Shown here in pieces: positions 13,061-48,690 of a DNA stretch of 64,000 bases. The DNA is taken from contig MU008151.1 in NCBI GenBank assembly GCA_010909165.1, positions 930,001 through 994,000 on the forward strand, given 5' to 3'. Origin of the DNA: Anthoceros angustus. Its lineage: Eukaryota > Plantae > Anthocerotophyta. The notes under the pieces are model-generated. The model saw only the letters and a program-made list of their open reading frames with translations. It had not been told where the DNA came from and made no database searches. Position 1 is the first letter of the stretch, and each line of letters begins with the position of its first letter. The position numbers and the translations under genes were made by a program.

Positions 13061-13089
13061 GCAGGATTTGGAGAGGACACAGGGGACGT

Positions 13090-17030: not shown

Positions 17031-20000
17031 CGATTGTCACCACCTTACTGCTACTCAAGCGCTTGCGCGTGCATAAATAATACCATGCGAGCATCGTCGG
17101 TCACACCTTAAAGCGTGGCTTTTGCAAAACCGTGAGAGCAACAGCAGCACCAACTTGCTCAAAAGATTGCCGAACCCCCGTAGAAACCATTAACCGGTCG
17201 ACCCCGCTTGTCCCTTGACACTTGAGCCACGTGTGCCACCATCGGTGAAGGATTTTCTCACCGGTCGACACATCCATGGCTATGGAATACCGATCTCTGC
17301 GCCCCTTTAGGGTTTTCCATTGTGACCAAAGAAGTTTTCATACGGCGGAAAACTCGGTGTTACACTGACGACATCGGCCGTCGGCCACCCTCCGATCGTC
17401 ACTAAGCATGTGGTATACGTGTCGAGAATCTTTTGTGGTTGTGACACACAATGTTTTCGTGAGGGCATGGGCCATCGGACATCCATTCGCATGACCCCAT
17501 CGCCGTCGGTTGCCATCACGACACCACGTGGCTTTATGGGAGATAAGCGTGGAGGAGGCACAGGCACTGTGCGTTCGCGAGCATACACCTGTGCGATAGC
17601 GTCAGCGCCATGTCGCCTCGCGCGCGCTATCGCAGCCATCCGTGCGTCAGGCGCACAAGGGGCCAGCCATACAGCCTCGCGGTGGCGCACCATCTTCGGA
17701 GGCCAGCTGTATGCTTGCATACAGCCCTGTGCTGACTCGCGAGCGCCGCGCCTGTCGCGCGCCAGCACCATATCACATAGGCCTCAGCGGTGGCGCCTCC
17801 ATCTTCACACAACCAAATTTTTACATTCCACCACAACAAAGCCACCACCGGGCTCAACTCTCAAAACGCCGTAACAAATCCAAATTGTCACCGCCTCGTG
17901 ATGGTGAGCGCACAATGTCACCGCCCTGTGTCATGGTGAGCGACAAAACACTTTTCTCCAGCCCACACCTAGCTCACTCCGGGCCGCAACTGGGCCACAC
18001 GCCTCACACCTCGTGCACCATAGACCGCAGCAGGTGATGGCCGCCCACGCCCACGGTGGCTTCAGCCTCCCACCGGTGGAGGTATTCGGGCAATGCGCCC
18101 TCGTGGCTCCCGCACTCGCAGAGTGTTGTTAGTGCCATGTGCACCGATACATGTCCGGAGGAAGTCCATGTCCCGCAATCCTTTGCATATGCATTGTCCT
18201 CGCCATCTGCAGCCTCGTGACAACCCACAGGGCCCATACGATTCGGGCCCCTGCTCGCACAATGGCGCGATGCGCCCTCCTCCAATCAGTAACATGACAA
18301 AATAAATGGATGCACAGGCTTGCTCACCCGCCAGCAATTTATGCCGAGTGGTGGCATCTCGGGGCCACGCTTTGTGCATACCGAGGGCCACCCACATCGC
18401 CCCTCGCCATCGCCTCCTCACCCCCATATGCGGTGGTGCACCCACCCTTGTAGTCGACCTTCTTCTTGAATGCGATAATGCATGGCCGGAATGTCCCCGC
18501 TGCCCGATCTTCCGCACCCCGCCTATTCCATACCGCCTCCAACGCCGCCTCATCGTGGGCATGAAGGTCACGCAGGTGGAATGGATGTGTGGGTTGGTGA
18601 TGTCGATTCGGCTCCTCACCATATCCATCATGTACCCTTGTAGAGGAATGCCCACTTCTCTCCCAAGGACCGCCAGAAATGCTCAATCCTCGCAACAATC
18701 CGCATTCATCGACTTCCACCACACCGCATAAGGAAAACGACAACCTCCTAACTTTTACAGTTGTGCACAGGGGCCGGATGAAGTTGCTTCCATGTGCCCT
18801 TGGCCTCGCTCGGTTCATATCCGCTTATTAGGTTGTGCTCTGCGTAGTCCGACCGAATCCGCGGATGCCCAAACTTCCTCACCGCTTCCACATAGGCGTT
18901 GAAAATCGCTGCTTGTTATCCTCCAAGACCAACTGTGGGACGAATGGGTTGCCCCATCTATGGCCCTGCACTCAAGTAGAATTGGTACATCTTGTCATAA
19001 GTCGCGACAAGGCAACTGCACCCGTCGATTGCACAACTCCCCGCAATCACTTCTTCCTCGCAACGCGAACTCGAACATCGCATGCCACTCACGCACTTAC
19101 AATCCATATGCCACATGTACATGGGTGTCGTCGACGGACGGCGGATGCGCATCGCCGACCGTGCCATGTGCTCCGGCCGCATCAAACGCAGCGCCCGTGA
19201 CCGCCTCCTTGGGATTTCGATTCCATCCAGCCAGCCGCCGCACGAATCGTATTCAGCGTTCACGCCGTCTTGTGATGGGTGTGTGCGTGGCAATCGGTGC
19301 ACACCTCCTCCACGGACAACCTCCCATACACCCCGCGCAGTGCCGATGCAGGAGCCTCGTCACTGCCTGCCGCACAGCTCCGCTGGTAGGCCTTTCAATG
19401 GTCTCCCCGCAAGTGCCGCACCGCCAAATCATACAGCTTATGAAGGCGGCGCGCTCCTCCTATGCATCCTTCATCTCCACCTTCCAGCCCTCATCCCCAC
19501 GGCTCCTCGCACGAGAATTGCCTCAAGTTTTCACCGTCTGTGATGATGATGGGCTTCCGCCATGACCTCTGATGCAGCCTGGCGGCGACCGCCCACCATC
19601 TTCCTCCTTCGTCCGCCGCCGGAAGGCCCCATGGGCACCCTTCACTGCTTTTTGCCCCACGTGATGGCCAAGGTGGAGACTTGGTGGCCTCAACACCTCA
19701 GACCTACCGCTAGCGCTTTTTGCCCCATGCGCCTTCCTCCCGTTCAAACCCCAAATGCACCTCTCTGAACATGGCCCGATTTCGATCCTCCTAACACTTT
19801 CCGCCCGAGTAATGGCATGTCCGCAGCCAAGGGTTTCGACAAAGGGACGCTCGATCACCGTTATGCCCACTCCGATTTTTGTTCCACGGACGGTCCGCCA
19901 GCTTCATTGACGGGGTTCCACACCGATCTGCAGAGGTAGATCGCCGCAGAAGTTCGTAAAGCGCCCGTAGCTTACTTTTGCTTCCGTGATTTCATTCATT

Positions 20001-20989
20001 GTTTGAAGTGCACCACAACACTTCCAAACCAACAGACGCACCAAACACCGTATGTGAACAATCTAGAATGGGCCGCTTCGCCGCAGTGCAAACACACTTG
20101 CGCCCCTCGCTTTCTCGCGCCATCGACAATTAGCGATGGCCTCGCTCTTCACTCTTCAGCCGGCCGCAAACCCGCAAATGATGTAACCGCCTTACCTCAA
20201 TGCGCAGGGTTCCACGACGGCCCCTGAACAAAAGGCATGGGATCTTCCAGCTATCGGGCGTATCCGTCGACCCCCATTGTGTGGCATGCCCCGATAATCG
20301 TCACATGCTTCCAGCGTTTGGAATACTCCCTCGCTCGATTCAAGTCCATGTAACATATGAAATGCCCCGCTGTACACGAACGGCAATGACCGCGCCCACA
20401 AAAAATTGTGTTGATCCAACTCCACAGGAGGATGCTCAATGTCCCAACCGCCGACAAACGAGCCTCACCGCATGTCAGTGCCGGTCCACAGCACATGTGA
20501 CGCCGGTCCCATTCCGCCCAACCGCCTCACCACTAGCTTCCAACTCCACTTCTCCGATTGCGTAACATCCATCGCTATCATTCCCTCCACTGCGACCATA
20601 GGGTGCCATCCAACCCGCTTTTCCTCCACTTTCGAACGATTTGATTGCCAAAAAGGCGTCCTTCTCTCACACAAAAACTCCCACGAAGCCTCCATTGACT
20701 TCTCACGAGCATGGTCACACCGCGCTCCTATCTCGATGGTCGCACGCAGATTGCAATCCGGCTCTTCGCGAAGATCCACAACGGCACCAACGTGCCATGC
20801 CGCTCTTGCTCCAAAGATTCCGTGCCCAAGGCGATACCGCCCACCGAGGCACCTTCCCCACCTCCAACCCAGACCTCAATGGTCAGGCCACAATCACCCC
20901 CCTCCACAGAAATGAAATCTTTGTGCATTGCGGACAATCGGAACCTCCAATACCATGAGTACCCATTTCCCGGACCAGATCGCCACACA

Positions 20990-23230
20990 CATTTCTCGCC
21001 TCCCCGGCCATGTACGCTCACATGCGGAGTCATGGAGTGGATTTGCCGGGACTCTCCCACTCCCACACCGGCTCCACTGCCCGCCCGCGAGCCACCGCTT
21101 CCACGGCCTCGCCCCGCCGTCCGCGCATGTGCCGATCGTCGTTGCATTGAGCCCGAGGCGGCGCCGGACGGCCATAAAAACCGCCGCTCCGATGACCACT
21201 CGCCACCGCAACCTCCGGCCGCCACAATATCGCGCCGCCGCCGGCATCGCGCCGCCCCTTCCTCCACTTCGCCGATCGCCTGCCCTCCCGGCGCCCACCA
21301 TCCACCTCGCCGCCTCGGATCGTCGCGCAGGACGACGCGCCCACCGCCACTCCGTGGCCGCAGCAAACTCGAATGGATCATACCCACTGCACACACAAGA
21401 GTTGTGAGGCTCGAGACGCCGACCGCGCAAAGCTTACATTTCTCGCCTCCCCGTGCCATACGCTCGACATGCGGAGTCGGTGGAGTGGATTTGCCGGGAC
21501 TCTCCCACTCCCACACCGGCTCCACTGCCCGCCCGCGAGCCACCGCTTCCACGGCCTCGCCCCGCCGTCCGCGCATGTGCCGATCGTCGTTGCATTGAGC
21601 CCGAGGCGGCGCCGGACGGCCATAAAAACCGCCGCTCCGATGACCACTCGCCACCGCAACCTCCGGCCGCCACAATATCGCGCCGCCGCCGGCATCGCGC
21701 CGCCCCTTCCTCCACTTCGCCGATCGCCTGCCCTCCCGGCGCCGACCATCCACCTCGCCGCCTCGGATCGTCGCGCAGGACGACGCGCCCACCGCCACTC
21801 CGTGGCCGCAGCAAACTCGAATGGATCATACCCACGCACACAAGAGTTGTGAGGCTCGAGACGCCGACCGCGCAAAGCTTACATTTCTCGCCTCCCCGTG
21901 CCATACGCTCGACATGCGGAGTCGGTGGAGTGGATTTGCCGGGACTCTCCCACTCCCACACCGGCTCCACCGCCGCCCGGCTTCCGCGAGCCACCGCCGC
22001 TTCCACGGCCTCCTCCGCCGTCCGCGCATGTGCCGATCGCCGTGCATTGAGCCCGAGGAAGGCGTTCGGGCGTCACCATACAAACCCGCTCGATGACCAC
22101 TCGCCAGCAACCTCCGGCCGGCCAACATCGCCCGCCGCCGCCGCATCATGCCGCGCCGCCCCTTCCTCCACTTCGCCGATCCTGCCCTCCGCCCGGCGCC
22201 GACCATCCACCTCGCCGCCTCGGATCGTCGCGACGACGGCCCATCGCCCACGCCTCGTGTCGCAAAAACTCGAATGGATCATACCCACGCAACACACAAG
22301 AGTTGTGAGGCTCGAGGTGACGCCGCCGACCGCGCAAAGCTTACATTTCCGCACTGGAGGCCACATAGCCCCGCCGCACTCGCCGCCGCCAGGGCGGCGA
22401 GTCAGACGCCCTTCGGAAAGCCGCACCAAGCATGGCCGTGGGCAATGGAGACCGCCTGTGCAATCCACCTCGCAATCAATAGCGAGGTTTGAGAATTCAT
22501 GGTGACCCACGCATGCAGCGCGCGGGCCGAGCACCTCTGTCTCCAGGTGCACCTCCACAGATCGACGCCGAAACGCCTCCCAAGGTGGGTGCGCTGCTGA
22601 TCCGCCACCGCGGCCGCAGCTTCCACTCCACCTTCCGCTCGGACGATCACACGGGTTGTCCATGGCCTCCCCACCTCCTCCGCCGCCATGGCTCCTTCCG
22701 GCGCCGACCATCCACCTCGCCGCCTCGGATCGTGCAGCGACGACGCCCCATCGCCCACGCCTCCCGTGTCCGCAAAAAACTCGAATGGATCATACCCCAC
22801 CGCACACACAAGAGTTGTGAGGCTCGAGATGACGCCGACCGCAAAGCTTACATTTCGCACTGGAGGCCACATAGCCCCGCTGCACTGCCGCCGCCAGGGC
22901 GGCGAACAGACGCCTCGGAAAGCTGCACAAGCATGGCCGTGGGCAATGGAGACCGCCGCGTGTGCAATCCACGCAATCAATAGCGAGGTTTGAGAATTCA
23001 TGGTGACCCACGCAGATGCATCGACACGGGCCGAGCACCTCTGTCTCCACTTGTAGGTGCACCTCCACAGATCCACGTCGAAACGCCTCCCAAGGTGGGT
23101 GCGCCAATCGTTGATCCCGCCACCGCGCCGCAGCTTCCACTCCACCTTCCGCTCGGACGATCGCCACGGGTTGTCCATGGCCTCCCCACCTCCTCCTCCG
23201 CCGCCATGGCTCCTTCCGGCGCCGCCGCCG
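20990..23230. repeat. GC-rich tandem repeats: about three ~445-bp units, then an overlapping ~500-bp duplication
   Basis: Duplicated ORF translations offset by 445 (ends 21407 vs 21852) and by 501 (starts 22489 vs 22990). Confidence 0.9.
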
Positions 23231-24789
23231 CACCTCCTCCTCCATCGCCTCGCTTCAACGCACCATCATGGCGGGCATTGAATGTGCACGGAATCATAGG
23301 TATACTTGCACGGCCTCGGATCGTCGAGATCCCCACGATACCGCCTTTACGCCGCCGCTCCATTCGCGCCCGTGACCGTCGCAGCGCCGCAGTATATGCC
23401 GCATGTTCCGCCACCGCACCCTTCCGTCAAGTGCGTGTGCAATTGCGATGCTACGCATTACATGCGATTCTCGCCACACCGTGCATTTTCAGCAAACATT
23501 GAATGTGCAATCGCACGCATCGCACACCTTACAACGATCCGCAACTTAGCGGCACTCTTGACGGACCGTGCTGCAGCCACCTGGCCCGCCGCCCGCAACC
23601 CTTACTTGCTGTTGGCGCTCACCATCGCCCGTGCTCCGCACCATCACGCCATTCCCAACCGCAACCAGATTACAATTTTGTGCCTTCACTACCGCACTTG
23701 GTTCGCTTCCACCGCCTGCACTCGTGATCCTCGCCAAGTACTCGAACATGGTTCTCCGTCGCCGGTTGATATCCCGGAACAACGCTCCGTCTTCTCATTC
23801 CATTCCATTTCTCCATACCGCACGAAATCAACCAATTCATAATACCTCATAGGCCACCTCTCCACAAGGTCGGCACTCGATGCGTGCACTGGAAAACCAA
23901 ATCCTAAGGTCGTCGGTTTTCGGCAGCTCTCCTTTCCGGTACCTCTTCCATCCGACGGCGCCAATCGAACACTTGGTGCATGAAAATGTGGCACTCCACC
24001 GCCCAGGTAGGCACTCTCGCAGAATTTGTCCACCGCCACTCCATCCGGCCCCTCACGGCAGTCGACAGACGGCAAGTTTCTCTGGATAGCCCTCTATGCG
24101 CAGACACTGGCTTTGATGGTCCTCCACAAATGCCAAGAACTTGGACAGCTCCCAGTAGTTGATGGGAACCATAGGCCACGCAGGAATGTACTCGCGCGAG
24201 CTTTGCATCTCCCATTCCTCCTGCCGGCCCCTTCCACGCGCCCCCCTCCACACAAGGCCGTGCTCGCCAGCAGACCTGCAAACATGCGCATCCGGGCACC
24301 GTGATTTGCACATCATCACAAGATGGGCTACCTACTCACCGCCGCCCTTCCACTCTTCAAGCGCAACCGCCGAACACACCAACCCACTGCCGCCCGCCTC
24401 GCCATCGCCGCCACGATCTTGTGTTCCTCATCCTCCTCCACGGCACGGGCGCGTTGCGCACCTTCCACCCACCCGCCACCCGCCACCGCGCCTTCCTTGC
24501 ACGTCGCACGCGCACTGCTTCCTTCCGCCCACCTGCAACCGTCCCTTCCACCGTCCCTTCTCCGCACGGGTTGCGACCGCCGATGATCATCATGGTGGCA
24601 CCGCCGTCTGCTCAAACCCAACCGACACTGCAGATCGCCACCCACTTCCTAATTTCACTAACCCCTCCCTTTGGTGGCGTGGCAGTAGCACACCGTATCA
24701 AACCCTTTCACTTTGAGGCTACACAACCTCCCAATTTTCATTTCCAACCAATCCATCTTCCCAAGGCCCAGTGGGCAAATACCCACCGG

Positions 24790-27480
24790 AAAGAGGTCAA
24801 ATCTATATACAAAAACCAAATCATAACCCAAAAAAGGTGCACATGGCATGTATGTATGCATGATGCATGGTTGCAATCGGATGCACGTGAACATGTCTAC
24901 CTAGATCTTGTGTCATAGCGCAATCCATCTATCCGCATCGCATGTATATATGGCATACTATGACACATATATAGGTCATCGATCTACATAGAAAAACCTA
25001 AACACCATAACCCAAAAGGTCCACACATGCACATGGTATGTATGCATGATGCATGGTTGCAATCGGATGCACGTGAACATGTCTACCTAGATCTTGTGTC
25101 ATAGCAATCCATCTATCCGCATCGTCATGTATATATACTATGACACATATATAGGTCATCGATCTACATAGAAAAACCTAAACACCATAACCCAAGGAAA
25201 AGGTCCATGACATGCACATGGTATGTATGCATGATGCATGGTTGCAATCGGATGCACGTGAACATGTCTACCTAGATGCCGTGGTCATAGCGCAATCCAT
25301 CTATCTCGCATCGCATGTATATATGGCACGATTATGACACATATATAGGTCATCGATCTACATAAAAAACCTAAACACCATAACCCAAGGAAAAGCGCAC
25401 GTTGTTAAGTGCATACATATCATTTGTTCAAGGCCAAGGACAAGTATGATAATAAATAAACCCAAAGTTTCGACATTCGGTGTGAGGTGGCACGTGATTC
25501 AACCTGCTTCCTTGGGCTTCGACACGCTACCGTGAACATGTCTATATATGTGGCTTCCTACCCAATCATAATTCGATTGTAGAAGTTTGTCGCATGGAAA
25601 GGCATCCATACTTGCCCCGCAGAGGTGGGTCAAGTAGACAAGGTCTTGTCTTCTTTCTCTCTTATGTCTTGTGGGATCCGCATTTTCCGGGAGCCTCGGT
25701 CCAACCCTTGCTGACGTGTTTCCTTGGTCTTCGACTTTAGCGAACATGTTGTCATACCACTTGCCATATGCCATGTGATTTGAGGGGTGCATGTGATGAG
25801 GCTGTATTGAATGTATGGCATGCACATGGTGTGTATGCATGAAGTATGGTTGGCATGTGTGCGTGAACATGCCTAGGTAGATGTTGTGTCATGCCACAAT
25901 GAATCCATGTGCATCGTGATGCATGTGTACTATGACACATATATAGGGTTGCGAACACATATATACATACATGAACAACATAACCCAATGAAAAGGGCGA
26001 GTACGTTGCATCGCATACATATCATTTGTTCAAGGCCAAGGACAAGTAGGTTTTAAATAGACCTATAGTGCCAAAGAAGTGAGAGGTGGCACGTGATTAA
26101 CCTGCTTCCTTGGTCTTGACATACGTACGAAACATGTCTATATATGTGGCTTCCTACCCATTCATTATTCGATTGTAGAAGTTTGTCCGCATGGAAAGGC
26201 ATCCATACTTCGCCATGCACTGGCTTCTTTCTCTCTTGACCTTTGGGATCTAGTGGGAGCGTTAGGCAACCAACTTGATCCCGCCTCGGTCAAATGCATT
26301 GCGCTTGCCTTGGTCTTGGACATAAGGGACCATTGTTCATGTGTTCATATACGAATATGCACCTCCTTCATTATTGTCATTGTCATTCGAGGAGGGAGCC
26401 GGAGGCGTGCCCCGCAACGTCATCCTCAACGCAAGTGCATTGTGTTCTATGGCGTCGCTGTCCAATTGCACATTCAACCTCGTCGCTTGCACATTCAACT
26501 GCAATTGCCTTTTTCGCATGCTATGCATTTCACCAATGTAAGGCATTGTATGCAGAAATTTCGCGCTTTAGGCATTTTGGTCTGTGGTCTTCTTTCTCTC
26601 TTATGTCTTGTGGGATCCGCATTTTCCGGTGGGAGCCTCGGTCCAACCCTTCGTGACGTGTTTCCTTGGTCTTCGACTTTAGCGAACATGTTGTCATACC
26701 ACTTGCCATATGCCATGTGATTTGGTAGGGGTGCATGTGATGAGGCTGCATTGAATGTATGGCATGCACATGGTGTGCATGAAGTATGGTTGGCATGTTG
26801 TGTATGTGAACATGCCTAGGTAGATGTTGTGTCATGCCACAATGAATCCATGTGCATCGTGATGCATGTGACGGTACCATAAGGATATATGGGTTGCGAT
26901 ACATATATCGAATACATGAACAACATAACCCAATGAAAAGGGCGAGTACGTTGTTAAGTGCATACATATCATTTGTTCAAGGCCAAGGACAAGTAGGTTT
27001 TAAATAGACCTATAGTGCCTACCAGTGAGAGGTGGCACGTGATTAACCTGCTTCCTTGGTCTTGACATGCATACCTAAACATGTCTATATATGTGGCTTC
27101 CTACCCATTCATTATTGTAGAAGTTTGTGCATGGAAAGGCATCCATACTTGACCATGCACCGCTTCTTTCTCTCTTGACCTTTGGGATCTAGTGGGAGCG
27201 TTAGGCAACCAACTTGATCGGCCACCTCGGTCAAATGCATTGCGATTGCCTTGGTCTTGGACATAAGGGACCATTGTTCATGTGTTCATATAACGAATAT
27301 GCACCCTCCTTCATTATTGTCATTGTCATTCGAGGAGGGCTGGGAGGCGCCGCGTCATCCTCGTTTGAGCGTGCATTGTGTTCTATGGCGTCGTCATTTT
27401 CAAATCTGCATTCAACCTCATTCATTCAACCTGCATTGCCTTTTTACGCTATGCATTTCACCAATGTAAGGCATTGTATG
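24790..27480. repeat. AT-rich repeat array: ~185-bp tandem units (24790-25400), then a ~950-bp duplication built from related motifs
   Basis: GGTTGCAATCGGATGCACGTGAACATGTCTACCTAGAT recurs at ~185-bp spacing. CATACATATCATTTGTTCAAGGCCAAGGACAAGTA occurs at ~25411, ~26014 and ~26961. Confidence 0.9.
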
Positions 27481-30400
27481 CATGAAATTCTGGCGGTTTA
27501 GGCATTGTTGGTTCGGTCGGCATTTTCGCTTTTGGTTTGTTGGGTGGGTTGGGGCTGGTTGGGGCGGTTGGGTTGGGGCGGGTTGGGGCGGGTTGGGGCT
27601 GGTTGGTGGTGGGGCCGGGCCGCGGGTGGGGCATGCCGTGCGGGCTCACGCCGCTTGCAGTCAGCCCTCCGTGCGGGCCGCGCGGGGCGCGGTGGCTCGC
27701 CCGCGACGTCCGTGGAGCGGGCCGTAAGGGCGGAGGACCGGGATGGGGTCGGGATGTGGGAGTGACCAGACAAATCTCCGAGCCATGAGGCTGGAAGGGC
27801 CAAGGCAACCATGCCATCGAAAATGTGAAGTGCGATGGTCGCGTTGCCAATATGGGCCATGGTCACGGATTTTATGGCAAGCAATATGGGATGGACTTCA
27901 TGAGCGCTGATCGCAGAATATGGCGGACTACGGAAATATTAATGCATAGCCATGGTGCATAGAATATGGCATGCCTCACGAGGCATATGTCCAGATGCGT
28001 GGCAGCGGGCACAACAACGCTGCTCGCCTTTCGCAAAACGCACCATTGGTCGATGAACGCACACGATGAGAATTGCATTTGAATAAGCGGCACAATGAAT
28101 TGCTTCACAAGGTATTGTGCGTCCGGACACCAATGCTCGAGGCGGCAGTTGATAGCGCATCATGTGCACTTCCCCACCCAATAGTTTATTCCGAACATAT
28201 CGGACCCAATATGTTAGTCGACACGCGACAGATCTTCGTGTGACGCGAAGGAACCATGATCACCGGGACCAACCGGCATGTTTGGCACGGCGCCGAAGTC
28301 AAACGCCGGCGACCACTATGTCATGTCCACCGCAACCAAAGTGAGAGTGGTGCGAGCGCAACGCGATGAGGGTGTTGAGTGGCCGGCGATGCATCCACCG
28401 CAAGATGGGGCGGCGCGTTGCAACTGTGGAGAGTTTGTGCCACATAGCCGCAATGCGCAGCACGCATATCGTGAGCCAAAACTACCGCAAGCGCACGCCT
28501 CCCATAATCAACTCGCATGCCGCGCCGTGATTATGTCGGGCCACGGAGAATATGGACAATGATTTCAGCTTGGTCAACCCACTCACTCAACGCCCGCGCA
28601 ATGCTTGGTGCATCACCGCCATCGATCTCCTTCCACAAGCGCTCTCGTCCCACACATCGAGGCGCCCGCACATCTACTGGCGCGGTATCGCAGGTGCCGG
28701 ATCTTCCACATGCACTATGGCGCTAAGACAACGTGAGCACAGACCTCTCAACCAACAGGGCAGAAGAAATTGTGGGCACATCTACGCACGGCAGAAGACC
28801 GAATGCGCGCGAATATGCGGATGGAGGTCATGATCCGCCTCCGATGGATGCGCGCCGGCCGCACCGCCATCGCAGCCGCCCTCGGAGCCGGGCGCGTACG
28901 CCGGCGCGACGACCTTTCACGGCGGCCGATGCCCAATATCGGCGCCATGAGCCTCGCCACGCCCAAGCCGCCATCGTTGACCGCCGGAGGTTCAACGTGG
29001 CGTCAGTGGCCCTTCCACATATGGCGAGAATGGGTGGGGATCATCACGCCACGCCCGCCACCGGTGGGAGGATGGAGGCGGCGCGAGGAGCGCCTCCCGC
29101 GCCGTTGGGACAATCCCATTCACGCATGAATCACGGCTGGGTATAGGCCCGGAAGAAGCAAAAGAGCGCGCGCACGTGATGGCGGAGGCGGGCGTTGGCT
29201 CACGTGCTCGGGTACAAGTACGCGGACAAGGCTTTCCCAAGGTCGACTTGGGAGATGGAGAAGGCGGCGAGTTGTCTTCGTGTCCGCCGACCACGCAGTG
29301 GAGCTAACGGTGCTGTGCATGCCGGGGGCGACGACACCAACGCTGCCGGGGTACGGTGTGCAGCCATTGTTGATGCGCGAGGCTCTATTCGACAAGCCCG
29401 CCGGCACCGGCCGCCAGGTCCGTGATGCCGGTTGCGCCGCACACACAAGTCCGGTATCCAGCGATATTCGTCTAATTTCCCGGCAACAAAACAGAGTGCC
29501 GACAGCCGATGCAAAATGCTGTACATCCGGGACGTGGCGCAATTTACACCTGCACGGAGGTGGGCAGCGAGCGCGGCGCCTGAGGTTTACGATTCGCCGG
29601 AGGAGGAAGAAGTGGATGTCACCGGGATGGAGAGCGGGCGTGGCGCGGTCGGGGGCGCGCCTGAGGGAGAGTTCAACAACGCCGATCGTCCGCATCCCCG
29701 ACCTTGAGGCACCCGCATCCCACCCGCCGACCTCGGACATGTGGGAGGAGGCACAATTTCCTCTCCCTCAAGGCTAACGCAGCGCGCCAGGGCCGCGGTA
29801 GGGCCTGCCCGCACGAGGCGGGCGCAGAAGTCCCGCGGCGGACGGGGCGGCACGCCTGCTCATGGAAGCGCCTCGGAGCGGAAGAGGCTCAACGCATGGC
29901 AACGGACCTTCTTAGTTGTGGAAGAGCTCCGCACACCACCGCAGTGGAAGGAAGGCGCTGCGGCGCGGGTGAACCGGCAGCCATCGCGAGGAGCTTCTTT
30001 TCTTCAAATTTTGGGTCACTTGCGGAGAAGGCGGAATGGCGATCGCGAAACCGATGCGGCGGCCGCTGCAAGGCTGCAACATCTTGTGGAGACAGCGCAG
30101 TAACGAACTCGGAAGGGGGCTCGCCGCATCCGATGGTCAAGGCATGGACGGGCTGGAAATGTTCGACATCGCCACCATCCGGGGTTCTTCGCACGCAGGC
30201 CTCGCCGGGCTGGTCCGCCTCGAGGACATGGACGACACTAGACCTTCGATCCATGACGGCGAAGAGTTGCGAACGCGAATAGCACCAACTTGAGGTTCGC
30301 GATGGATGAGGAGGAGATGCTCGATCGCACCGCAGCCCACCGCAGTGGGTCGCCCAGCGCAGGAGAGGCGGAAAAGAACGGCGCAGACGCGGCTATGGCA

Positions 30401-31279
30401 TTCCGCGCGAGGAGCGACGATGCGACACACGCCGCGATGCATGGCTTTGTGACCGAGAAGGCTCGTATGCCGTCCGAACGGAGCAGGAGCGGCGATTCGA
30501 GGACATCCTAACCCTCCGGTGAGCGAGATGCCATTATTTGCATGGTGCCTCGATGGGGTTTGAACGACGCGCGTGGTGATTGCGGTTGAGGCGGGCATGG
30601 AGTGCCAACAACTGCTCGACAATCGACGGCCGAGGGGGACCTTTCCCACCGCTTAGAGTGCGATCGCACTGTGCATGGGGTGATGATGTAGTCCACGAGG
30701 TTGGAAGGACGCAGTGCCCACGCGACGGTGCATCGAGGCCTCGAAGTACTCGAGTCATTTGTGGACGGCGTGTTCGAACGCAACGCAACGCCGCCACATT
30801 ACCACATCACCATGGAGTGCATCCGACCTGCCGCATGGTAAGATATTTGGGCTCAATTGATGCAAAATGTGCAGTGCCGACGACGGCAGATGCCTCCTCA
30901 GGCAGTGCCATGTTCTTCGCCACCGATGTCACTGCAAAATGGCATTGAGGTGAGTCGTCCCATGACATTTGCCACACTCACGACGCACTAGGGAGCCAAA
31001 AGGATGGCGTGCACAAGGAGTGGAAGGATGCGGGCACGAGAGGACGTTGAAGAGGGCTTTTAAGAGGCGGATATGTTGACAAGCCACCCACATGGCCATC
31101 CTCCAAGAATCAAACGGGGCTCAGTAGAAAGAGGAGCAGCAGTGCGATTTCATCGCTGGTCCGATGGCGCATGTGCTCCGGATTTTTCAAGCATGTGGCC
31201 GACCAAGCCCTCGCATGTCCCGGGGCGGTGGCGCGATTCGGAAGAAGGTGCGGGACCTTTTATTCACCGAGTGCCCGTG

Positions 31280-33299: not shown

Positions 33300-34900
33300 A
33301 AATCCATTTCCCAACTACACGGTACTTGCCTATCCTCGCCTATATAAGACAAGGCCTTCCCTTTGGACCATCCCGACTGGCCATGAAAGGGAAAATACTC
33401 ATTGGCCTTTGGAGCTTACATTGGCAATGAAGGGAACAAAACTCCTTGGCCTTTGCACCAATATGTCAATCAATGAATGGAAGGAAGACCTTGGCCTTTG
33501 GACCAAACCGAGAATCACCAAATGAAACGAAGTACCTATGCGACCATTGCGACCGCTTAGCTGTGAGCATTGCGGCTGCATAGGTGCGCCCATTGCGACA
33601 GCACAGCTGCGAACTGACGCTCCCACTAGACAATGCGGTTCCCAAAGGTGAGAAGAGGGGAAAAAGAGAAAAAGAAGGGACGAAGTATGGCTGCCTATCC
33701 TTTATGACAAACATGTACAATCGAAGAATCATAGGTTGGGTAGCCCACATATAGGCAAAACCACCGGGACTCTCGATGAAGCACCACCGCACTGATGGTA
33801 GGCACTATGATCTATTTAGAGTCCTACTTCTCCTTGGCCTTTGAACAAATGATATTTATGCGCTTAACAACCTACTAGCCCTTTTCCTTGGTTTATGATT
33901 TTCAGGTATTTTCTATATAGGTGCGTGACCTATATATGTGTCGAGTAATGCCTTACAAACATCGCGATGCACATAGGTTGATTGTGCCATGACACAACAT
34001 CTAGGTAGACATGTTCACATACACCACATGACGTGGTCCAAAGGCCGGGGCCAAGGACGTTTCTTCCTATATATAGGCGGTAGGGATAGGCAAGAAGTAG
34101 TTGGTAGTCCATGGTTGGGTAGCCCATATATAAAAAACCGGAACTGATGGAGTGCCACCTCACACGATGGTAGGCGTTAGGTATATTTGTAATCCCACTT
34201 GTCCTTGGCCTTCGAACAATTGATATTCATGCAATCAAGAACGACGCCCTTTTCCTTGGGTTATGGTGTTTACGTAGTTTGAATATAGATGCGCCGACCT
34301 ATATATGTGTCATAGTACCAGCGAACATGCATCACGATGCACATAGATGGAAAAGGTGCCATGAGAGCATCTAGGTATACATGTTCACATACTTCACATG
34401 TCAACCATCCATCCCGCATGCATGCATACCATGTGCTTTCCATGTGCACATTTTCCTTGGGTTTTGATTTTTAGGTCTTTTCTATATAGATTCGCTGACG
34501 ATGTATGCCGAGTACCGCGTCAACATATATCACGATGCACATGCACATGGTATGTATGCATGATGCCCGTTGATGTGATGCATGTGACCATGTCTACGTA
34601 GATCTGTCGTGGGCACCTTTTCCTTGGGTTTTGATTTTATGTCTTCTATATACGCACGTGACCTTTATATGTGGCATGGTACCCTTCCCGACATGCATGA
34701 CGGTGCACATACATGGATTGTGCCATGGCACAAAGATCTAGGTACAAATGTTCGATGCATCACATGACAACCAGCCATCATGCATACATACCATGTGGAT
34801 GCCATCCATAGGCAATGCACATGTGACATTGGTCCAAATGCGAAGGACTTTTCTTCCTATTTATAGGCAAGGCAGGAAAGGCAAGTACCGCGGTAGATGC
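33300..34900. repeat. AT-rich repeat array, inverted relative to 24790-27480
   Basis: CTTTTCCTTGGGTTATGGTGTTT, CTAGGTAGACATGTTCAC and CCTTGGCCTTTGAACAAATGATAT are reverse complements of motifs in the 24.8-27.5 kb array. Confidence 0.85.
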
Positions 34901-38534: not shown

Positions 38535-39943
38535 TGCGGCCAAGTGTGCACTTCGGGAGTTAGGAAATAAGTAGGGTTTCGCTTTTTTAGGATTGAAGGA
38601 TAAATAAGGCGGAAAAGGAGGAATAAATTGGGGTAGCGCCCGGACGAGGCTCCGAGTATCTCCCGGACTGGAGTGAACAACGGACCGACTAATCATGGCA
38701 AGCTCCGGACCACGCCGAGTAACGGATAAGTCCGAACCTACCCAGTCAAAATAGGATGGGCACGCCCAAGTAACCCCGGGAAATGGAGGACTTGAGGAGA
38801 GCCACGGAGGAGTCCGTGAGGAGGAAACCTGGGCGGAGTCCCGACTTTGTCCGGACCTCAGAGGGGAGGCCGACCAAGTCCGGACCCCAGAATAAGTCCG
38901 ACCAAGTCCGGACTTAATAAGTCCAAGTCCGGACCAAGTCCGGACCAAGTCCGGACCACGAGGTCCGGACCACGAGGTCCGGACCAAGTCCGGACCAAGT
39001 CCGGACCAAGTCCGGACCACAGTCCGGACCCGAGGACCGGGGCAAGAAGGGAGGAGCCCCCGACTTACGCTTAGGGGAGCCGATAGCCGGTGGCCCCACC
39101 GCGGGACCTGTGGAGGCCAGGAGGATGACGTGGTAACGGCGTTGTCGACCGCCGCCAGAGCCCAACCCGACAGTGATTCCGGGAGAGGAGGGGCCACGGA
39201 TCATCCGATTGGGTGCACCTAGTCGGGGACGAGTTGGACCACCCATTCCGAGGGGCCTGTGACCTTCCTCCACAATAAGGAGATAGGGGGAGATAGGTAG
39301 ACGATTAGGTATACCGAAAGCTATCACCGTAATAGGGGTGTAATAAAGACGCCACCTTCAGATAAGAGGGGCCGAGGCCGCCTAGTAAAGCATCTTTCTC
39401 TTGGTGTTGATGCGCGTTCTTGCGGACCTTTGTGAGTCTTCTTGCTAACGTGAGTCCCGAGTCACCGAAAGGTGCACGCCCGGGAGATTGATCAAGGTCC
39501 CGTGACGACTTAACGCGTTGTGGTGTGTGCGGGGAAGGGTGATCGTGATCCGTGTCCCGAGCCGCGTCCGACACCGAACTGACCGAACGTGCGGAGCCGA
39601 GGAACTCGGGAGGGTGTGTAGAGCCGGACGGAGGCCCGGAACGCGGAGGAGGAGGTCCGGATCACAGAACCCCGCCTTTTCTAAGATCAAGAGTGTAGCG
39701 TGAGAGGAGAGAGGAAAGGACTGGATGCAAGGATGGTGAACGATACGGACGCGAACGGGTCCTAAACGCTTGGCCATACCGCAGACGTGAACGCCAGAGT
39801 AGTTAGGAGTATGTGTGTGTTGAGACCGAACGAGCGCTAAGGACGTAAGAATCACCAAACGCGTAACGGGCCTATCATTCCCTTGGGAACGGACTTCTTC
39901 CTACAACGACACGGACGCGCCGCCATGCAAAAGTCCCGCCACA
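38535..39943 (+). repeat. 5' LTR
   Basis: Direct repeat of 45637-47050; ends ...GTCCCGCCACA; internal GGACCAAGTCC tandem repeats at 38870-39030. Confidence 0.88.
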
Positions 39944-39946
39944 TTT

Positions 39947-39962
39947 TGGCGCTGCTGGGGGA
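39947..39962 (+). other. Primer binding site
   Basis: TGGCGCTGCTGGGGGA lies immediately after the LTR, similar to the tRNA-Asp-type PBS TGGCGCCGTTGCCGGGGA of Athila-like elements. Confidence 0.7.
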
Positions 39963-42900
39963 ATGAAATCGGTCTGGTGCAGTGCGCCCTTAGGAAGAGA
40001 AGGTAAGTGAATGCGTCGACCGGTCAAGAGTGAACTGCCGAGGATCGGACGTGGTCACCTCGCGTGCTCTCCGAGCCGTGAGAGGAGAGACGCCAAACCC
40101 AACGAGAGCACCGCCGATCGAGGAGGGAGAACGTGGTCGAATTGTCGACCAAGACGAGTACGGGTAAGGGACGCCAACGGAAGAAGGTAGGACCCACGCC
40201 TAACCCATCGATGGCGCAGCCATGGCCCCTACCTCGACCAAACAAGCGCATCTATTCGGAGGGAAGAAGGAGCGGATGCGAGACCTTTGTGGAGGACTTC
40301 ATGTCCAAAGCCAACTTCAGCGGAGAGGGAGTCGACGTACCATCCAAATTTTCCAAGGGGTTCTCCGAGGACCGCTCAATGGTATCGGAGAAAGTACCGA
40401 CCAGGAGAATGCCCCACCCGCCTCGTTTGAAGCTTTGAAAATGCCTTCTTAGAACGGTTTCGAGGATCGACCGGGAGGGTATGTATTATCAAAGTTGGAA
40501 AATCAGGCGAGGAAGAAGGAGAAGCGGGCTCAGACATCGAGCGGTTCTATGCCCCGAGGATCGGCATCCAACCCATACCACCACGGGTACGGTGGTTGGC
40601 GGTCTAGCCAAACCCATGGCGAGCACGTCCTGCTGGCCGAGAAGGGCGTGGGCAAGGCGGTCGAGCGCCGAAAACTACGAGGAATCGCTACATCGAGGAT
40701 AAAGAAATCCGCTCAAGGAGGCAAGAAGAAGAAGAAGAAACGGGACTCCGAGGAGGAAGAGTCTTCGAGGAGGAGGAAGACCAATCGGAGGTGTCTTCTG
40801 AGGAGGAGCGTCCAAGAAGAGACGGAGGTCTCTAGCGAGGAAGAGTATCCCGCAAGAAGAAGAGCAAGAAAGCCCCAAAAAGAAGGTGGTAAGAAGGAGG
40901 TGGTGACACCAAGACCGTCCGAGAAGCTCCACCGGACCCGACTCCCTCAAAGGAGGTGGCAGTGCAGGAGGACTGGAAAAAGTGATAAAGAGAGTAGAGG
41001 ACAGCGATAAACTGTTAAGGACCGAGAGCGCGGAAAACACCGACCACGGAACGATCTCGTGTGCCGTGCCAAGCCACGGCCATTCGAATCCAACCGCCTC
41101 AAGGCCTCAAGTGGACTACGAATACGAGGAGGAGGCCGAGGAGCAATGGGAAGAGGCCTATCGCATGTGAAGCCCCTCCGGGCCGCGATATCCCAAAACC
41201 ATGTATCCGCCAACCGGAGGTCCGTCAATACAACGAGCCCCACTGCATGGGAGCCCTTCGTATCCTCCGACCGTGGTCGCTGGAACCGCGGGAATCTGGC
41301 CATTACTCCAACGCGTGTCCGCACTCAACGAGGTGGTAATGGGGACTTCGAGCCGGTGGCGATCGCAAGGCCGGGCATATGACATGCAAGACGCTATGTC
41401 CCAACCTCACAAGGACGGTAGCGATATGCCACACCAAGCGGAGAACCCGACCACCAACGCCACCTCCTAAGACTGACTGCAAGTCAAGATGCTCGATTGG
41501 CGGAGTGGGAAGAGATTCCCAGTGCGAGATGGAAAGAACAAGAAGGTACGGTGGGGGTGTCGAAAGGAAGGGAGTTGGAGTGGAAATCTTGAGGTGTCTA
41601 CTCAGAGTCAAGGAAGGAGCGACGAGAAAGGCGCCAGAAGAAGAACAAGATCGAGGAAGGCCACGGACGCCGAGGAAGGCAATCAAACCAAATACCAGCA
41701 GGATCCGACCGATGAAGGAGGGCTGGACGGCAGCTCGCCGAGGGATTCAAGGAAGTTCTCCCAGTGATGTGGAGAAGGAACGGTGCCTCCGCGACGGCGA
41801 CGTTAGCTTCCACGGACGTAGTCCGGAGGTGACCGAGATGTTGCAGGAGGAAATGCGCAAGCATCCGGAGAATACCGTAACACGTGACCCGGGAGAGGAT
41901 GAGGACGCAGCAGGATCCTCGATTGGGGTAGAAGCCTCGCCTTTAATGTGGACGATGATGAATCACAGCACCTTGTGTCCTTTCGACCTGCCGAGGATAA
42001 CCCAAATACCGGCAAGAGGTCCGTCGGGCCGTTAGGAAACCAGCCTCGGAGCACCAAAGCCGTGAAGGGTAGCACAGTGAAGTGAGGTGGTGTCCCATAC
42101 GACCTGGGGCGCCAGGTACAAGTGGAGATTGGATGTATCATCAAGGATGTACTGCTGGACACGGGTCCGAGTCAACCTCATCATCAAGCCACGACGAAAA
42201 TTGGGCTTCACATCCTTCAACCTCAACGAAGACTCGAGAATGGCGTATATGTCAAGAAGAGATCCGCGGGAGTTAACCGAGTCTTGGCCACCATAGCCGG
42301 TGCACCCTACAAACCGGATTTTGTTGTGATCAAACCGCCGACCATTAGGGTATGAGGTGTTCTTTGGGCGGCCATGGTGGGTTGGCCTGCACGCTACACT
42401 TTGGAAGGAAGGAGATTCACTTCAAGCCGTGGTGGGACCCTAAGGTGCGAGAAGGAGGTTGCTATCACCGGAGCAAGGACACCTATTGTGGGGAAACTGT
42501 GAGCACAAGGGTATACGGAGGACTCCAATCGAAACAAGATAGTTCCGAGGAGGCGACTTTCGCCAAGATCCGGTCCGAGGAGGAGATGGACTACCGGATG
42601 CCTTTGAAGTGGTTGATTGTTTTGAGTAAACGCCACAGCTGGAGGAAGGAAGTGAAGAGGAGGTCGGACCAAAGACAAGGGGAGACAACAAGAGTCGGAC
42701 CAAGGAAAAGCTGACATCAAGGAGTAACACGATTCACCTCCGACGAGCTCAGAATGGGGATGCGAGAGGACGATCCCGAGAGGAGGACGAGGGGTTTGAC
42801 GCGAGGCCGCGAGCAGGAGGCAGTGAACCCGGACGACGTGGAAGAAGTGGAGGTCCGCCTGCAAATTCTCAAGTTTAAGAAAGGCATGCCTCGGACCAAG

Positions 42901-45636
42901 GAAGCGGACATCGAAGGAGTAACACGATTCACCTCCGGAGCTCTTGAGAGAATGGGGATGCGAGAGGGCGATCCCGAGGAGGAGGAGGACGAGGGGTTTG
43001 GGCAGGCCGCGGGAGCAGGAGGCAGTGACGGCGTGGAAGAAGTGGAGGTCCGGCCAGGCAAATTCACGAAGTTTAAGAAAGGCATGCCTCGGACTGAAGG
43101 AAGGACTAAAGCATGGGGAGTTTTATGTTCGCCTTCAAGGTCACGGACATGAAGGGCATTCAAGAAGTGGGAGAGCATAAGATCGATTTGAAGCCGGAGG
43201 CGGTGCCGGTCAATCCGACAATACAAGCTCAACCCCAAGTATTCGATCAAGGTGAAGGAGGTCCTTGATAAGTACCGGAGGCAGACATCATTTTCCCCAT
43301 CACACAACGAGTGGGTCGCTACGGTGGTGGTTCCCAAGAAACAACCAGACAAATTCGGGTATGCCAAGATTGAGGAAGCTCAACGCCGAACGAGAAGGAC
43401 CACTTCCGATGCCATTCAGACGACATTTTGGACAAGGTGGTGGACGGACTACTTACTCCTTCCCGGATGGCTACTCCGGATATAACCAATTGCACCTAAG
43501 GGAGTTTGACCGACAAGACGACCTTCACTACGAGTGGGGTACGCTTGCCTACAAGAGAAGTGCCTTTGGGATGACCGAGCGCCTGTGGTCGCTCATGCGA
43601 TGGTGACCAACGTCTTGTGACTTCGAGGGACTTCATGGAGATATTCTGGATGATTTTGTGTGCATGGGGAGGACAAACACCTTGGGCATCTAAGAAGGTG
43701 CTTGAGCGCCGGAGACTCAATTGAGCCTACACCCGAGAAATGCTACTTTGGAATGACGGAGGGAATCTTGCTTTGGGACATCGGGTGTCGGCGGGGAATC
43801 GAGGTGGACCAGACAAGGTCCGGTCATCCGCCTCTCACCACGACGAACCTAAAGGAGCCGAGAGGTTTCACAGGAATGGTGGGATACTACCGGTTTATTA
43901 AGGACTTTGAAGAGGCGGCTAAGTTGATGTAACCATCGGAAGGAGGAGGTTTGGACCGGTCACGTGAGCGAGAGGAGGCCTTCGGGAACACACCTTGGTA
44001 AGCACCGGTTCTAAGAGGACCGGATCGAGCAGAAATTTCATGTGTATGTAGATGTGTCCGCTTTGCTATCGGAGGTGCCGAAGGAACGAAGGGATTATCC
44101 CGATACTACTACGACACACCCACGCTGAACGAAAATACACAACTACAGAGCCAAGTATGGTATATGTCAAGAAATTCGACACTACCTACCCAAAGGAGTT
44201 TGTGTTCTATGTAGACCACTTTGTCAAGCATCCGTGAATAAGACGGACTCCGGACGGATAGCAAGGTGGATATTGAGTTCACGTCAAGTGGAAACAAGAC
44301 AAGGGAGGCAAGACCAAAATGCGATTTCTCACACGATTGAAAACAGGTGTGAGAGATCGTGAAGATGCGCTCCTGGATGAGACATTGGTTGCCGCAGAAA
44401 GAAGTACAACCGGAGGAGCCCAGACCGAACCCCAAGCTACGAGAACACTTAGCGTAAGCGGAGAAGGGAGGTCCGCCGTCCGACCCACGAAGAAATAGAG
44501 CGTACTGGGAATGGAGCTCAAAATCGACTCGTGGATGAGGGAGGCATTGCACTATGCTCGACCCTTCGTAATGTACAACGGTGTGTGTTCAAATTAGGGC
44601 CTGACGGAGTAGAACGAAGGTACTTGCAAACCGCAGAGGAGCTCGCCGGGAATGCACGAAGGATTGGGGTGGACACACGAAGACAGTCACCACCAAAAGA
44701 TTTGAAGCGGATACCGTGGCCAACAATGTATGGGGACACCCACCGCTTAGAAGAAGTGTGATGCTTGTCAGGATCGGAAGCCAACCCCGACACAAAGGCC
44801 GCTAGTACCGATATTGGCACCGCACCTTCAAAAGTGGGGTATTGACTTTGTTGGACCTATACGACAAGACACACACAAAGGAGATACATCCCGTGGCAAC
44901 GGATCATCGCACTGTGGGTAGAGGCGGGCGACATAAGAACGGACTCGCAAATAGTGGCCAAATTCTGACGAGAACATCATAACCCGCAGATGTCCGCCGT
45001 AGCTTGGTGATAGGGGAACCCATTTCCTTAATGATGTGGTGGCCGCCATGACGGAGTATTGCATCAATCATCGCAAGACGGCACCCTACAATCCTAAGGC
45101 CAATGGGTGACAGAGAAGACAAATGGGCTCATCCGCAGGATCAATAAACTCAAGAACTACGCCCATGATCGATACTGCCATCCGTGACCGTATGCCCGGC
45201 AGAGAAGGTGACCACACAACGGACCCCTTACTTGACCTACTGACACTCTCCCGTAATGCCGAGTTTGAAGTGCCCACTTTTCGAGTAATGATGGAAGGAG
45301 ACCGACAAGAGGAAAGCCACGAGCGACTCTTGGGGTTTGTGCAAAGACATGAGGACAGGGAAGAAGCTCAGAAGATGCAACAGGTGCAAAACCAAAAGAT
45401 TTGGCACGATCGCCGATCGCGAATCGTGGAGTATGTAAAGGAAGGGACCGCCCTCCTTTATGATAGTCGACATGCATTTTCCGTGCAAACTTCACCGAGA
45501 TGGGTCAAGTGGTGCAAGTATATGACAACGGGTCCGTCCAGCCCACGGCGCCTAGATGGAGAGTCGCCCACTTGAAACGGGTGGGGTGAAGAAGTATGCT
45601 TAGTGTTGGCGAGACGCCAATGATGAGAAGGGAGTA

Positions 45637-47050
45637 TGTGGGCTATGCACTCGGGAGTTAGAAATAAGTAGGCTTTAGGATTGAAGGATAAATAAGGCGG
45701 AAAAGGAGGAATAAATTGGGGTAGCCCGGACGAGGCTCCGGAGTATACCCGACTGGAGGAACAACGGACCCCGACCACTATGGCAAGCCCGACTACGCCG
45801 AGTAACGGGATAAGTCCTAACCCACCCAGTCAAAATAGGATAAGTACGCCGAAAGTAACAACAATGGAGGACTTCGAGGAGAGCCACGGAGGAGTCCGTG
45901 AGGAGAAACCCGGTGGATGAGTCGACTTTGCCCGACCCTGAGGGGAGGCCGGACCAAGTCCGACTGTCCGGACCAAGTCCGGACTAATAAGTCCGGACCA
46001 AGTCCGGACATGTAATAAGTCCGGACCTCAAGTCCGGACCCCAATAACCGACCGAGGTCCGGACCCCGCAGACAGTCACAGCCGGCCGACCTGTGAATAA
46101 GCCGGACTCAAGTTCGTGAGTCGAGACAGACCTCGAGGACCGTTGCGGCAAGAAGGAGGAGCCCCACTTCACGCTAGGGGAGCCGATAGCTGGTGGCCCC
46201 ACGCGGGACCTGTGAGGCCAGGAGGATGACGCCGTGGTAACGGCGCTCACCGCCGCCAGAGCTCCAACCCGGCTGTGATTCCGGGAGAGGAGGGGTCCCG
46301 CCTCACGGATCATCCGATTGCACCACAACCGCTGACGGGGATTGGACCACCCATTCCGAGGGCCTGTGACCTTCCCACCGGCAAGGAGATAGGGGATAGG
46401 CCGGTAGGCGGCCGATTAGGTATACCGAAATGGGTTATCACGTAATAGGGGTGTAATAAAGACGCCACCTTGGGCGCAGATAAGAGGGCCGAGGTCGCCT
46501 AGTAAAGCATCTTTCTCTTGGTGTTGATGCCGCACCTTTGTGAGTCTTCTTGCTAACGTGAGTCCCGAGTCACCGAAAGGTGCACGATACCCGGGAGATT
46601 GATCAAGGTCCCGTGACGGACTTAACGCGTTGTGGTGTGTGCGTGGAAGGGTGACCGGTGATCCGTGTCCCGAGCCGCGTCCGACACCGAACGGACCGAA
46701 CGCGGAGCCGGAGGAACTCCGGAGGGTGTAGAGCCCGGACGAGAGGCCCGCGGAACGACGGAGGAGGTCCGGATCACAGAACGGCCTTTTCTAAGATCAA
46801 GAGTGTAGCGTGAGAGGAGAGAAAAGGATCGGATGCGTGAAGGATGTGAACGATACGGACGCGAACGGGTCTAAACGCTTACACCAGTTCAGTGCACGCC
46901 AGAGTAGTTAGAGTATGTGAGACCGAACGAGCGCTAAGGACGGTAAGAATCACCAAACGCGTAAACGGGCCTATCATTCCCTTGGGAACGGACTTCTTCC
47001 TACAACGACACGGATTGTGGCGCGCCACGGCCAAAGAAAGTCCCGCCACA
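45637..47050 (+). repeat. 3' LTR, preceded by polypurine tract GAGAAGGGAG (45625-45634)
   Basis: Starts TG, ends CA, collinear with the 5' LTR. Confidence 0.88.
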
Positions 47051-48690
47051 GAAGAATGGCCGCATCCTCCATGCCATCGGGCCAATGTGCAAGCAAGGGT
47101 TGCCGTGGTGGGATACCACCTTCCCAAGAATCGCCCCCCACGCCTTCCAGCCCGGGTCCCCTTCCCATTGGTGGGGATGAACCCCGCCTCCCAACCTCAC
47201 AGGGACAGTTGGTGCACTGCCCGCCATGGCACAATCGGGTGCACCTCCCATGTCGTGCGTGAGGGGACATTCGCCCCTCCAGCAAGACAGACAGCGAACG
47301 AAGTACGCCAGAGGAGGAGCTGGAGCACAAGAGGATGGAGGGCTGCTCCGAGGCTCTTCCAATCGATCGGGGCGAGGGAGGTGTTTTTTTTTGTGGAGCG
47401 CCCCACCATGGTGTGAGCGTACTATGTTCGGATGTTTTGGTTGCTGAACGGCATGCGCAGTGTCTAGGATCGAAGTGGATTTGTAGGACGCAGCGACATT
47501 GCTTTGATGAGGTTGAGGAGGGGGATAGTGTGAAGCATGTTCAGGACCGTAATGCTCGCATTGCACGGTTTCCTTCGCAATCGTGTTCGGTTTGAAAGGT
47601 GAAGTTACGATCATCTTCGGGTGTCTGCCGCCCCATACATCCAACCGCAAGCACAAAAGCATGTTAGTAGGCAAGCACACCAAACGTAGGATCGCTCCCA
47701 CATCCCGCTCCTTCCCGCATATATAGTGAAAGCGATGTGTAGGATTGCGTGGGCGAACGCGGCCATACTGCGAACAAAAGTTCTCGTGTATGTGTTGCCC
47801 GCCATGTTTGTAGACCATGAAAACCCTAACACCGCTATCAAAAAGATTCAGATGACACCTAACATGTGATGAACGTGATAGAATGTTTTTCCCGCTGCAC
47901 CCCGGTGAAGTCGTGGAACATAATGTGTATTATACGTGAGTATCAAAAAGATTCCGTGGCATATCCTCGCAGAAAGAAAGAAAGTCACACATGACTCCGT
48001 GTGACGAGATCCAGATTCCATGGCCTTCGGAAAGGTGTGATTACCCGATTTGCAACATTTGCAGCCTATAATATAAACTCATCACCATTCTCGATACATG
48101 AACCATTGATGCCAAGGACGTCATATGCCCTCTTGAGGATTGATGGCAAGGACGCCCATATGCCTCCAGAATGTTCATATGCAACAACAATAACAACAAC
48201 TTTATGTATGTCCACCGGAAATCTATTGGAAAGAGAAAACAATCGATCCCGCTATTCACTGAGAAACACCATGGGTTATATCCGCAATATCATTGCACTT
48301 GGAACCCTTCCCGTATGGTTTGGGAGAGGGTGTTGTTCCCTTCAGCTGCCAGACTGATGAGCTTAGATTCATGAAAGATCATGTTATCGAAAATTATAAG
48401 TAAAGGGTTTCTAGGTGATCCAGCCTATGGACACCAACCCAACCCAACCCAACCCAAATTTATCATTCATCAGGACCGCACGGAGTCGCTTCCCCTGCTC
48501 CGCCCGGTCCCGACCGACCGACAAATTCCCATTCCCATTTACTTATTTTAGCATGTTTAAGTTTAAGTTTCCGCTTCATGTGGAAGTTACTACGCTGTCA
48601 AGGCTGGTGGTGTGGCTGAGGAGCAAGACCGCCGCCTCATTCCATTCTAGCGGTCAGGAAGCATAGTACAAAGATAGCATGACATGCGGC

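Follow-up and report, generated by a model that had tools for sequence, protein, structure and literature searches.

A 30.7-kb insertion bounded by short terminal inverted repeats in a TRN1-like gene array of Anthoceros angustus

In Anthoceros angustus, a block of 30,736 bp bounded by inverted ends has been inserted upstream of a TRN1-like (LRR-Roc-COR) gene copy that is now truncated. The copy belongs to a tandem array of such units, recognized by self-comparison and BLAST, which makes up the window analyzed here: a 64,000-nt stretch of the forward strand (assembly GCA_010909165.1, contig MU008151.1, positions 930,001-994,000). All coordinates are positions in this window, and “the block” means 17281-48016 unless stated otherwise. 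The insertion is real, and the ends of the block are true terminal inverted repeats (TIRs). The block is best explained, and probably so, as the remnant of an old non-autonomous TIR cut-and-paste DNA transposon, which nested repeats have enlarged in part or for the most part. The element is filed here as a TIR DNA transposon, with its superfamily unassigned.

The insertion, its empty site and its ends

Self-comparison separates three paralogous units, of which two carry the argument. Unit C is split by the block, and unit B preserves the corresponding site in its empty state. The parts concerned are the following:

~48982-58048: unit B
between units A and B: unit C, truncated and split by the 30.7-kb block
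17273-17280, plus strand: left copy of the 8-mer TCCATGGC, a literal target duplication
17281-17297, plus strand: left TIR, T + ATGGAAT + ACC + GATCTC
17281-17600, plus strand: left subterminal region, whose motifs TTAGGGTTTTC, GAATCTTTT, CGGTGTTA and GCGTTCGC are shared, inverted, with the right subterminal region
47051-48016, plus strand: right subterminal region of the outer element
48006-48022, minus strand: right TIR, in its minus-strand reading C + ATGGAAT + CTG + GATCTC
48017-48024, plus strand: right copy of the 8-mer TCCATGGC
48017-48961, plus strand: continuation of the truncated TRN1-like unit C, equivalent to 49289-50314 of unit B
49289-49303, plus strand: empty site in the paralogous unit B, palindromic and resembling the left 8-mer plus the left TIR tip

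The start of unit C (16389-17280) matches the start of unit B. In self-BLAST, 17107-17287 aligns to 49121-49303 and 48017-48133 to 49289-49411, and TCCATGGC is found in unit B only once, at 49289-49296. An earlier note on this DNA had proposed an insertion of about 30.7 kb with a reconstructable empty site, and the proposal holds. When 17090-17280 is joined to 48025-48260 and aligned to 49100-49530 of unit B, the rebuilt site runs through the junction without a break, at 95% identity over 368 aligned bases. Equally sound is the note's placement of the insertion upstream of a TRN1-like copy now truncated: gene homology in unit C begins about 400 bp downstream of the insertion point, and the unit is gone after about 0.95 kb (48017-48961), stopping where unit B begins (48982). 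Such a gene-upstream position is a typical landing place for plant DNA transposons.

At the boundaries first proposed the terminal match was weak, a 6-mer at unequal offsets. The TIRs were defined by scanning small shifts of the two ends, and the short TIRs of the earlier note emerge better defined than it had them. Read inward, from 17282 on the plus strand and from 48021 on the minus strand, the two ends have in common ATGGAAT, three unmatched bases and GATCTC. This 13-base pattern is exact at 17282-17297 on the plus strand and at 48006-48021 on the minus strand, and with up to one mismatch these are its only two sites in the 64 kb (0.15 expected). When the right end is read to 48022, it is identical to the left TIR at 13 of 17 positions. 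A third TIR-like site at 19211-19226, with two mismatches and in right-end orientation, is found 1.9 kb away from the left one. An internal end or a short relative would look like this, but the site is within chance expectation (1.56) and was set aside.

The similarity extends inward from the TIRs. Aligned in inverted orientation, the 330 bases inside each end score 179.5; shuffled sequences score 148.6 +/- 8.5 and other parts of the insertion 149.8 +/- 9.6, about 3.6 and 3.1 standard deviations below the observed value. The first 300 bases inside both ends share nine inverted 8-mers, vs. 2.0 +/- 1.9 in controls. An 11-mer, TTAGGGTTTTC, recurs at 17307-17317 and 47819-47829, and lies beside a single plant telomere repeat unit, TTTAGGG (17306-17312).

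Duplication length and resemblance to the target

The earlier note had assigned the insertion an 8-bp duplication overlapped by the right TIR. The overlap is confirmed: the right TIR tip ATTCCAT (48015-48021) uses 48017-48021 of the right 8-mer and 48017-48022 lie in the right TIR, so that five to six bases of the 8-mer also form the tip. The 8-mer is also literally duplicated, at 8 of 8 positions; what falls away is its diagnostic value, since duplications of 2, 3 or 4 bp fit equally well. How long, then, is the duplication? Because bases of the right 8-mer also build the right TIR tip, it may be read in four ways:

8 bp, TCCATGGC: loss of the outer 6 bases from the right TIR, e.g., through TCCATA/TCCATG slippage
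4 bp, GGCT/GGCC: a single substitution, which gives both ends perfect 7-base tips
3 bp, GGC: one T too many on the left, so that the TIRs are out of register by a base
2 bp, GC: ends that are mismatched at their first base (T/C)

All four yield an identical empty site, and every one requires the same coincidence, namely that about five target bases equal the TIR tip. A duplication of 8 bp would suggest a hAT-like or other 8-bp family, and 2-4 bp are equally compatible; with such ambiguity the length cannot be used for naming the superfamily. Therein lies a cautionary case: where a palindromic target resembles the TIR tips, the apparent duplication length cannot name a superfamily.

The empty site of unit B is a palindrome at 12 of 14 positions (49289-49302), and 49289-49303 matches the left 8-mer plus the left TIR tip (17273-17287) at 13 of 15. 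It is because of this resemblance that the BLAST alignment of the left flank extends into the element, by 7 bases. The 15-base empty site also resembles the element's two TIR tips set end to end (TCCAWGGCCWTGGA-like joined ends). Such likeness between target and ends, seen here in a single instance, may reflect chance, target choice or the recombination of a circular form. Should further copies show the same likeness, unusual target choice would be indicated.

Recombination of a circular form is the strongest of the rival explanations, and an unlikely one. Circular DNA would have been integrated by site-specific or microhomology-guided reciprocal recombination, with no staggered cut. The element's ends, once joined, would make up a lox/att-like palindrome (6 + 3 + 7 bases, a 4-base center, then 7 + 3 + 6) and recombine with a target palindrome sharing its 8-base core, so that the “8-bp duplication” would be a crossover core and not a product of fill-in. 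This accounts for the palindromic empty site, for its 13/15 identity with the left 8-mer and TIR tip, and for the entry of the left-flank alignment into the element, and does so without any coincidence between tip and target. Elements that integrate by recombination are rare or not known in land plants. A specific version, in which a mobile element that selects its sites, of a kind so far undescribed in land plants, would recombine its joined palindromic ends with genomic palindromes that mimic them, is very unlikely. Against recombination of a circle also stands the Pfam scan, in which the block's open reading frames (ORFs) of at least 50 residues hold no tyrosine or serine recombinase domain. 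Moreover, the case is a single one, and palindromic targets are the norm for transposases that work as dimers and are common with DDE transposases too (PMC3276498).

Coding capacity, interior and surrounding array

All 389 stop-to-stop ORFs of at least 50 residues on both strands of the block were translated and scanned against Pfam. No transposase, reverse transcriptase, integrase, recombinase, SWIM, Ulp1 or KDZ family was found among them. Five matches fell below E = 0.01 (FLYWCH at 0.0036, LLPH, Keratin_matx, Prok-JAB and CAF1A), where about four are expected by chance; the FLYWCH match, tried as a possible MULE finger, is accordingly at chance level for 389 ORFs. As a positive control, the same scan of 123 flank ORFs recovered Roc (two members, one per gene copy), LRR_6, Arf/Ras and PPR. 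The long ORFs of the block read like translated G+C-rich non-coding DNA. The 309-residue ORF adjoining the right end has no relatives in a large protein collection by word-based homolog search; 3-base periodicity in the block, a weak test, is at background level; and translated self-comparison revealed no hidden protein-level repeats common to block and flanks. The earlier note was thus right that there is no clearly recognizable transposase. The MULE, hAT, KDZ/CxC, SWIM and Ulp1 domains that it proposed to search for gave no signal in the Pfam scan, and its “coding-like” GC-rich tracts lack Pfam domains and have translations that look non-coding. Since no recognizable protein is encoded, the element is dead.

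The interior of the block is a mosaic:

20989-23224: tandem array of 2.2 kb, ~445-bp period, ~5 copies, 65-69% G+C
24798-27205, plus strand: lower-G+C repeat array, left arm of an inverted pair, with 185-bp and ~940-bp periods
27206-33593: G+C-rich segment of 6.4 kb with no Pfam match, enclosed by the inverted arrays
33594-34819, minus strand: right arm, with the same repeat units as 24798-27205, inverted, at 71-80% identity
37748-37805, plus strand: isolated fragment resembling the 3′ end of the long terminal repeat (LTR) below
38547-39943, plus strand: 5′ LTR-like direct repeat of 1.4 kb, TG...CA
39944-45645, plus strand: internal region of the LTR-flanked unit, purine-rich, no gag/pol domain, with a 198-bp tandem repeat at 42695-43103
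45646-47050, plus strand: 3′ LTR-like direct repeat of 1.4 kb, TG...CA

The LTR-type unit (38547-47050) measures 8.5 kb, and a TGG-starting stretch lies 3 bases past its 5′ repeat and a purine-rich tract before its 3′ repeat. The 5-mers flanking it, AAGTG and GAAGA, form no 5-bp target duplication, and its ORFs of at least 50 residues gave no Pfam match to gag, reverse transcriptase, RNase H or integrase. Where the earlier note had spoken of nested LTR elements that leave about 20 kb when removed, one such unit stands, and the remainder is about 22 kb. The 10 kb at 24798-34819 look like a foldback-type nested element, for which no target duplication was found. No long diverged TIRs or giant palindrome, searched for by comparing left and right arms (BLASTN with word size 7, nhmmer), exist beyond the arrays at 24.8-27.2 and 33.6-34.8 kb. 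Nested or secondary repeat thus accounts for at least 8.5 kb of the block and probably for more than 18 kb; about 10 kb fall outside the named repeat parts.

A tetranucleotide signature unlike that of the host flanks is common to 17281-24797 and 27206-33593 (r 0.5-0.63), and the G+C-rich body (within 17281-38546) shows no CpG depletion, with observed/expected ratios of 1.0-1.2, compared to 0.6-0.7 in the flanks and 0.59-0.68 in the host units. The LTR unit is distinct again, being GpC-poor (0.57-0.74). The inverted arrays (24798-27205 and 33594-34819) are host-like in composition, with 44% G+C and a CpG observed/expected ratio of 0.7, and the G/C skew changes sign at 25-27 kb.

These data bear on a second rival, in which the block would be a truly giant element of an undescribed superfamily, its G+C-rich body of about 14-20 kb being its own and its transposase too divergent or broken to be recognized. 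The shared tetranucleotide signature and the undepleted CpG of the two G+C-rich stretches are consistent with such a body. No ORF exceeds 365 residues, though, and the non-coding look of the translations, the empty Pfam scan, the want of a homolog for the longest right-end ORF and the background periodicity all argue against it; the explanation is quite unlikely. The earlier note's giant, possibly undescribed transposon is not supported, given the lack of coding capacity and the extent of nested or secondary repeat, and nothing shows that all 30 kb moved as one piece.

The remaining features concern the array itself.

~1567-16959: unit A, from self-comparison

About 6 kb interrupt unit A at 9222-15243, and this interruption holds a partial second copy of the gene's C-terminal part, at 11807-13011, which is similar to 5122-6339 and 52922-54129. 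Between copies A and B, gene homology spans 4.9 kb. The longest ORF in a TRN1-like copy has 348 residues (360 from stop to stop) and the longest anywhere in the window 365 at most; the copies in A and B are either intron-rich or else broken. A word-based homolog search for other paralogous upstream sites, made with the 360-residue LRR ORF of copy A, returned nothing at E<=1e-10. An Rfam scan of the whole window gave no match, and thus no rRNA, tRNA or SINE-like part.

Origin, timing and likeness to known systems

How might the block have arisen? The outer element would have inserted upstream in unit C of the array, after C diverged from B. A transposase acting in trans would have recognized the 16-17-bp ends (Y-ATGGAAT-N3-GATCTC) along with the subterminal motifs, and made a staggered cut in the palindromic target. 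Much of the 30.7 kb would then be secondary, consisting of the 8.5-kb LTR-flanked unit, the 10-kb inverted-array segment and the 2.2-kb tandem array.

As for timing, the flanks of units C and B differ by a Kimura two-parameter (K2P) distance of 0.05-0.08, and the LTR-like pair by 0.043. As the latter is no greater than the former, it fits nesting of the LTR unit after the outer element's arrival. The divergences are likewise consistent with, while not proving, the order duplication, outer insertion, LTR nesting. Both the paralogous and the LTR comparisons contain about one gap opening per 13-15 aligned bases, with many homopolymer-length differences, and about as many transitions as transversions (27:27, 38:39 and 108:126). 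Such indel rates and ratios are unusual for plant divergence and may in part be assembly error in repeats.

Several points weigh against a decayed TIR transposon. Within the window a single copy is seen, with no second copy between different flanks. The duplication length is ambiguous, and as a result no superfamily is a clean match. On either side the TIR tips and the target are alike, by five bases each; under a plain staggered cut this is left to coincidence, with odds of roughly 1 in 1000 given the palindrome. The frequent small indels could hide a decayed, frameshifted gene from an ORF-based search. Finally, about 14 kb of the non-LTR body have one tetranucleotide signature and no CpG depletion, and part of the block's size may therefore be the element's own body.

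Two further explanations dispense with transposition altogether. The filled state could be ancestral, with illegitimate recombination at two 8-bp repeats having removed the 30.7 kb from unit B. Loss of the DNA between short direct repeats gives the same one-copy vs. two-copy pattern, and the window contains only one empty paralog. It would nevertheless leave unexplained the exact 13-base inverted match at both boundaries and the inverted subterminal similarity, and the composition of the block differs from that of the rest of the unit; the deletion is scarcely plausible. An assembly artefact, i.e., a chimeric join, might be suspected in a repeat-rich region whose paralogs differ by very many small indels, and is the least plausible explanation of all, as a misjoin would not give matched inverted ends and a duplicated target that restores the paralogous site. 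Inverted ends together with subterminal motifs are the anatomy of a TIR transposon, which rules out both a simple unit B deletion and an assembly misjoin. Helitron, LINE and organelle DNA were also tried and rejected on the ends, which show neither TC...CTRR nor a poly(A) or simple tail, and on the composition of 57% G+C.

As a dead TIR element devoid of genes, lying in a tandem gene array rich in repeats, the block is of little significance in itself. Its value is for annotation: the element separates the promoter region from the truncated TRN1-like copy, and it dates the decay of unit C to after the B/C duplication.

Among known systems, foldback elements and MULEs with long or multiple TIRs, as described in PMC3310237, recall the nested part of the block and not the outer element: the inner segment 24798-34819 is similarly bounded by kilobase-scale inverted subrepeat arrays, but has neither a definable target duplication nor sharp termini. 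The unit at 38547-47050 resembles LARD-like non-autonomous LTR elements in its 1.4-kb TG...CA direct repeats, its lack of gag/pol, the TGG-starting stretch after its 5′ repeat and the purine-rich tract before its 3′ repeat. It differs from them in its unequal flanking 5-mers, and its primer-binding site is a candidate only, with no tRNA match made.

For the outer element, likeness to MULEs is poor: the duplication is at most 8 bp (9-11 in MULEs), the TIRs are 16-17 bp long (at least 100 in MULEs), the subterminal similarity is weak, and the 389 ORFs hold no MULE transposase, SWIM domain or WRKY/FLYWCH finger above chance. As regards P and Zisupton/KDZ elements, the Pfam scan contains no THAP/Tnp_P, KDZ/CxC or Ulp1 family at E<=0.01.

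The closest system is that of non-autonomous, Ds-like hAT elements, from which the block departs in several respects. The consensus of hAT elements has a TIR tip YARNG and a target nTnnnnAn; here the tips are TATGG and CATGG, with T and not a purine as third base, and TCCATGGC carries C and G at positions 2 and 7, respectively. The 8-bp reading requires the right TIR to have lost its outer 6 bases, and the block is far above the typical size of Ds-like elements unless inflated by nesting. No hAT BED finger, DDE core or dimerization domain occurs in the 389 ORFs, which a non-autonomous member would lack in any case. What the block shares with Ds-like elements is the absence of a transposase from the copy, a location on the 5′ side of a gene, a literal 8-bp duplication, uncertain in length, two ends that differ in their first base (T/C), as in Ac, and subterminal repeated motifs behind TIRs of 16-17 bp that start with YA.

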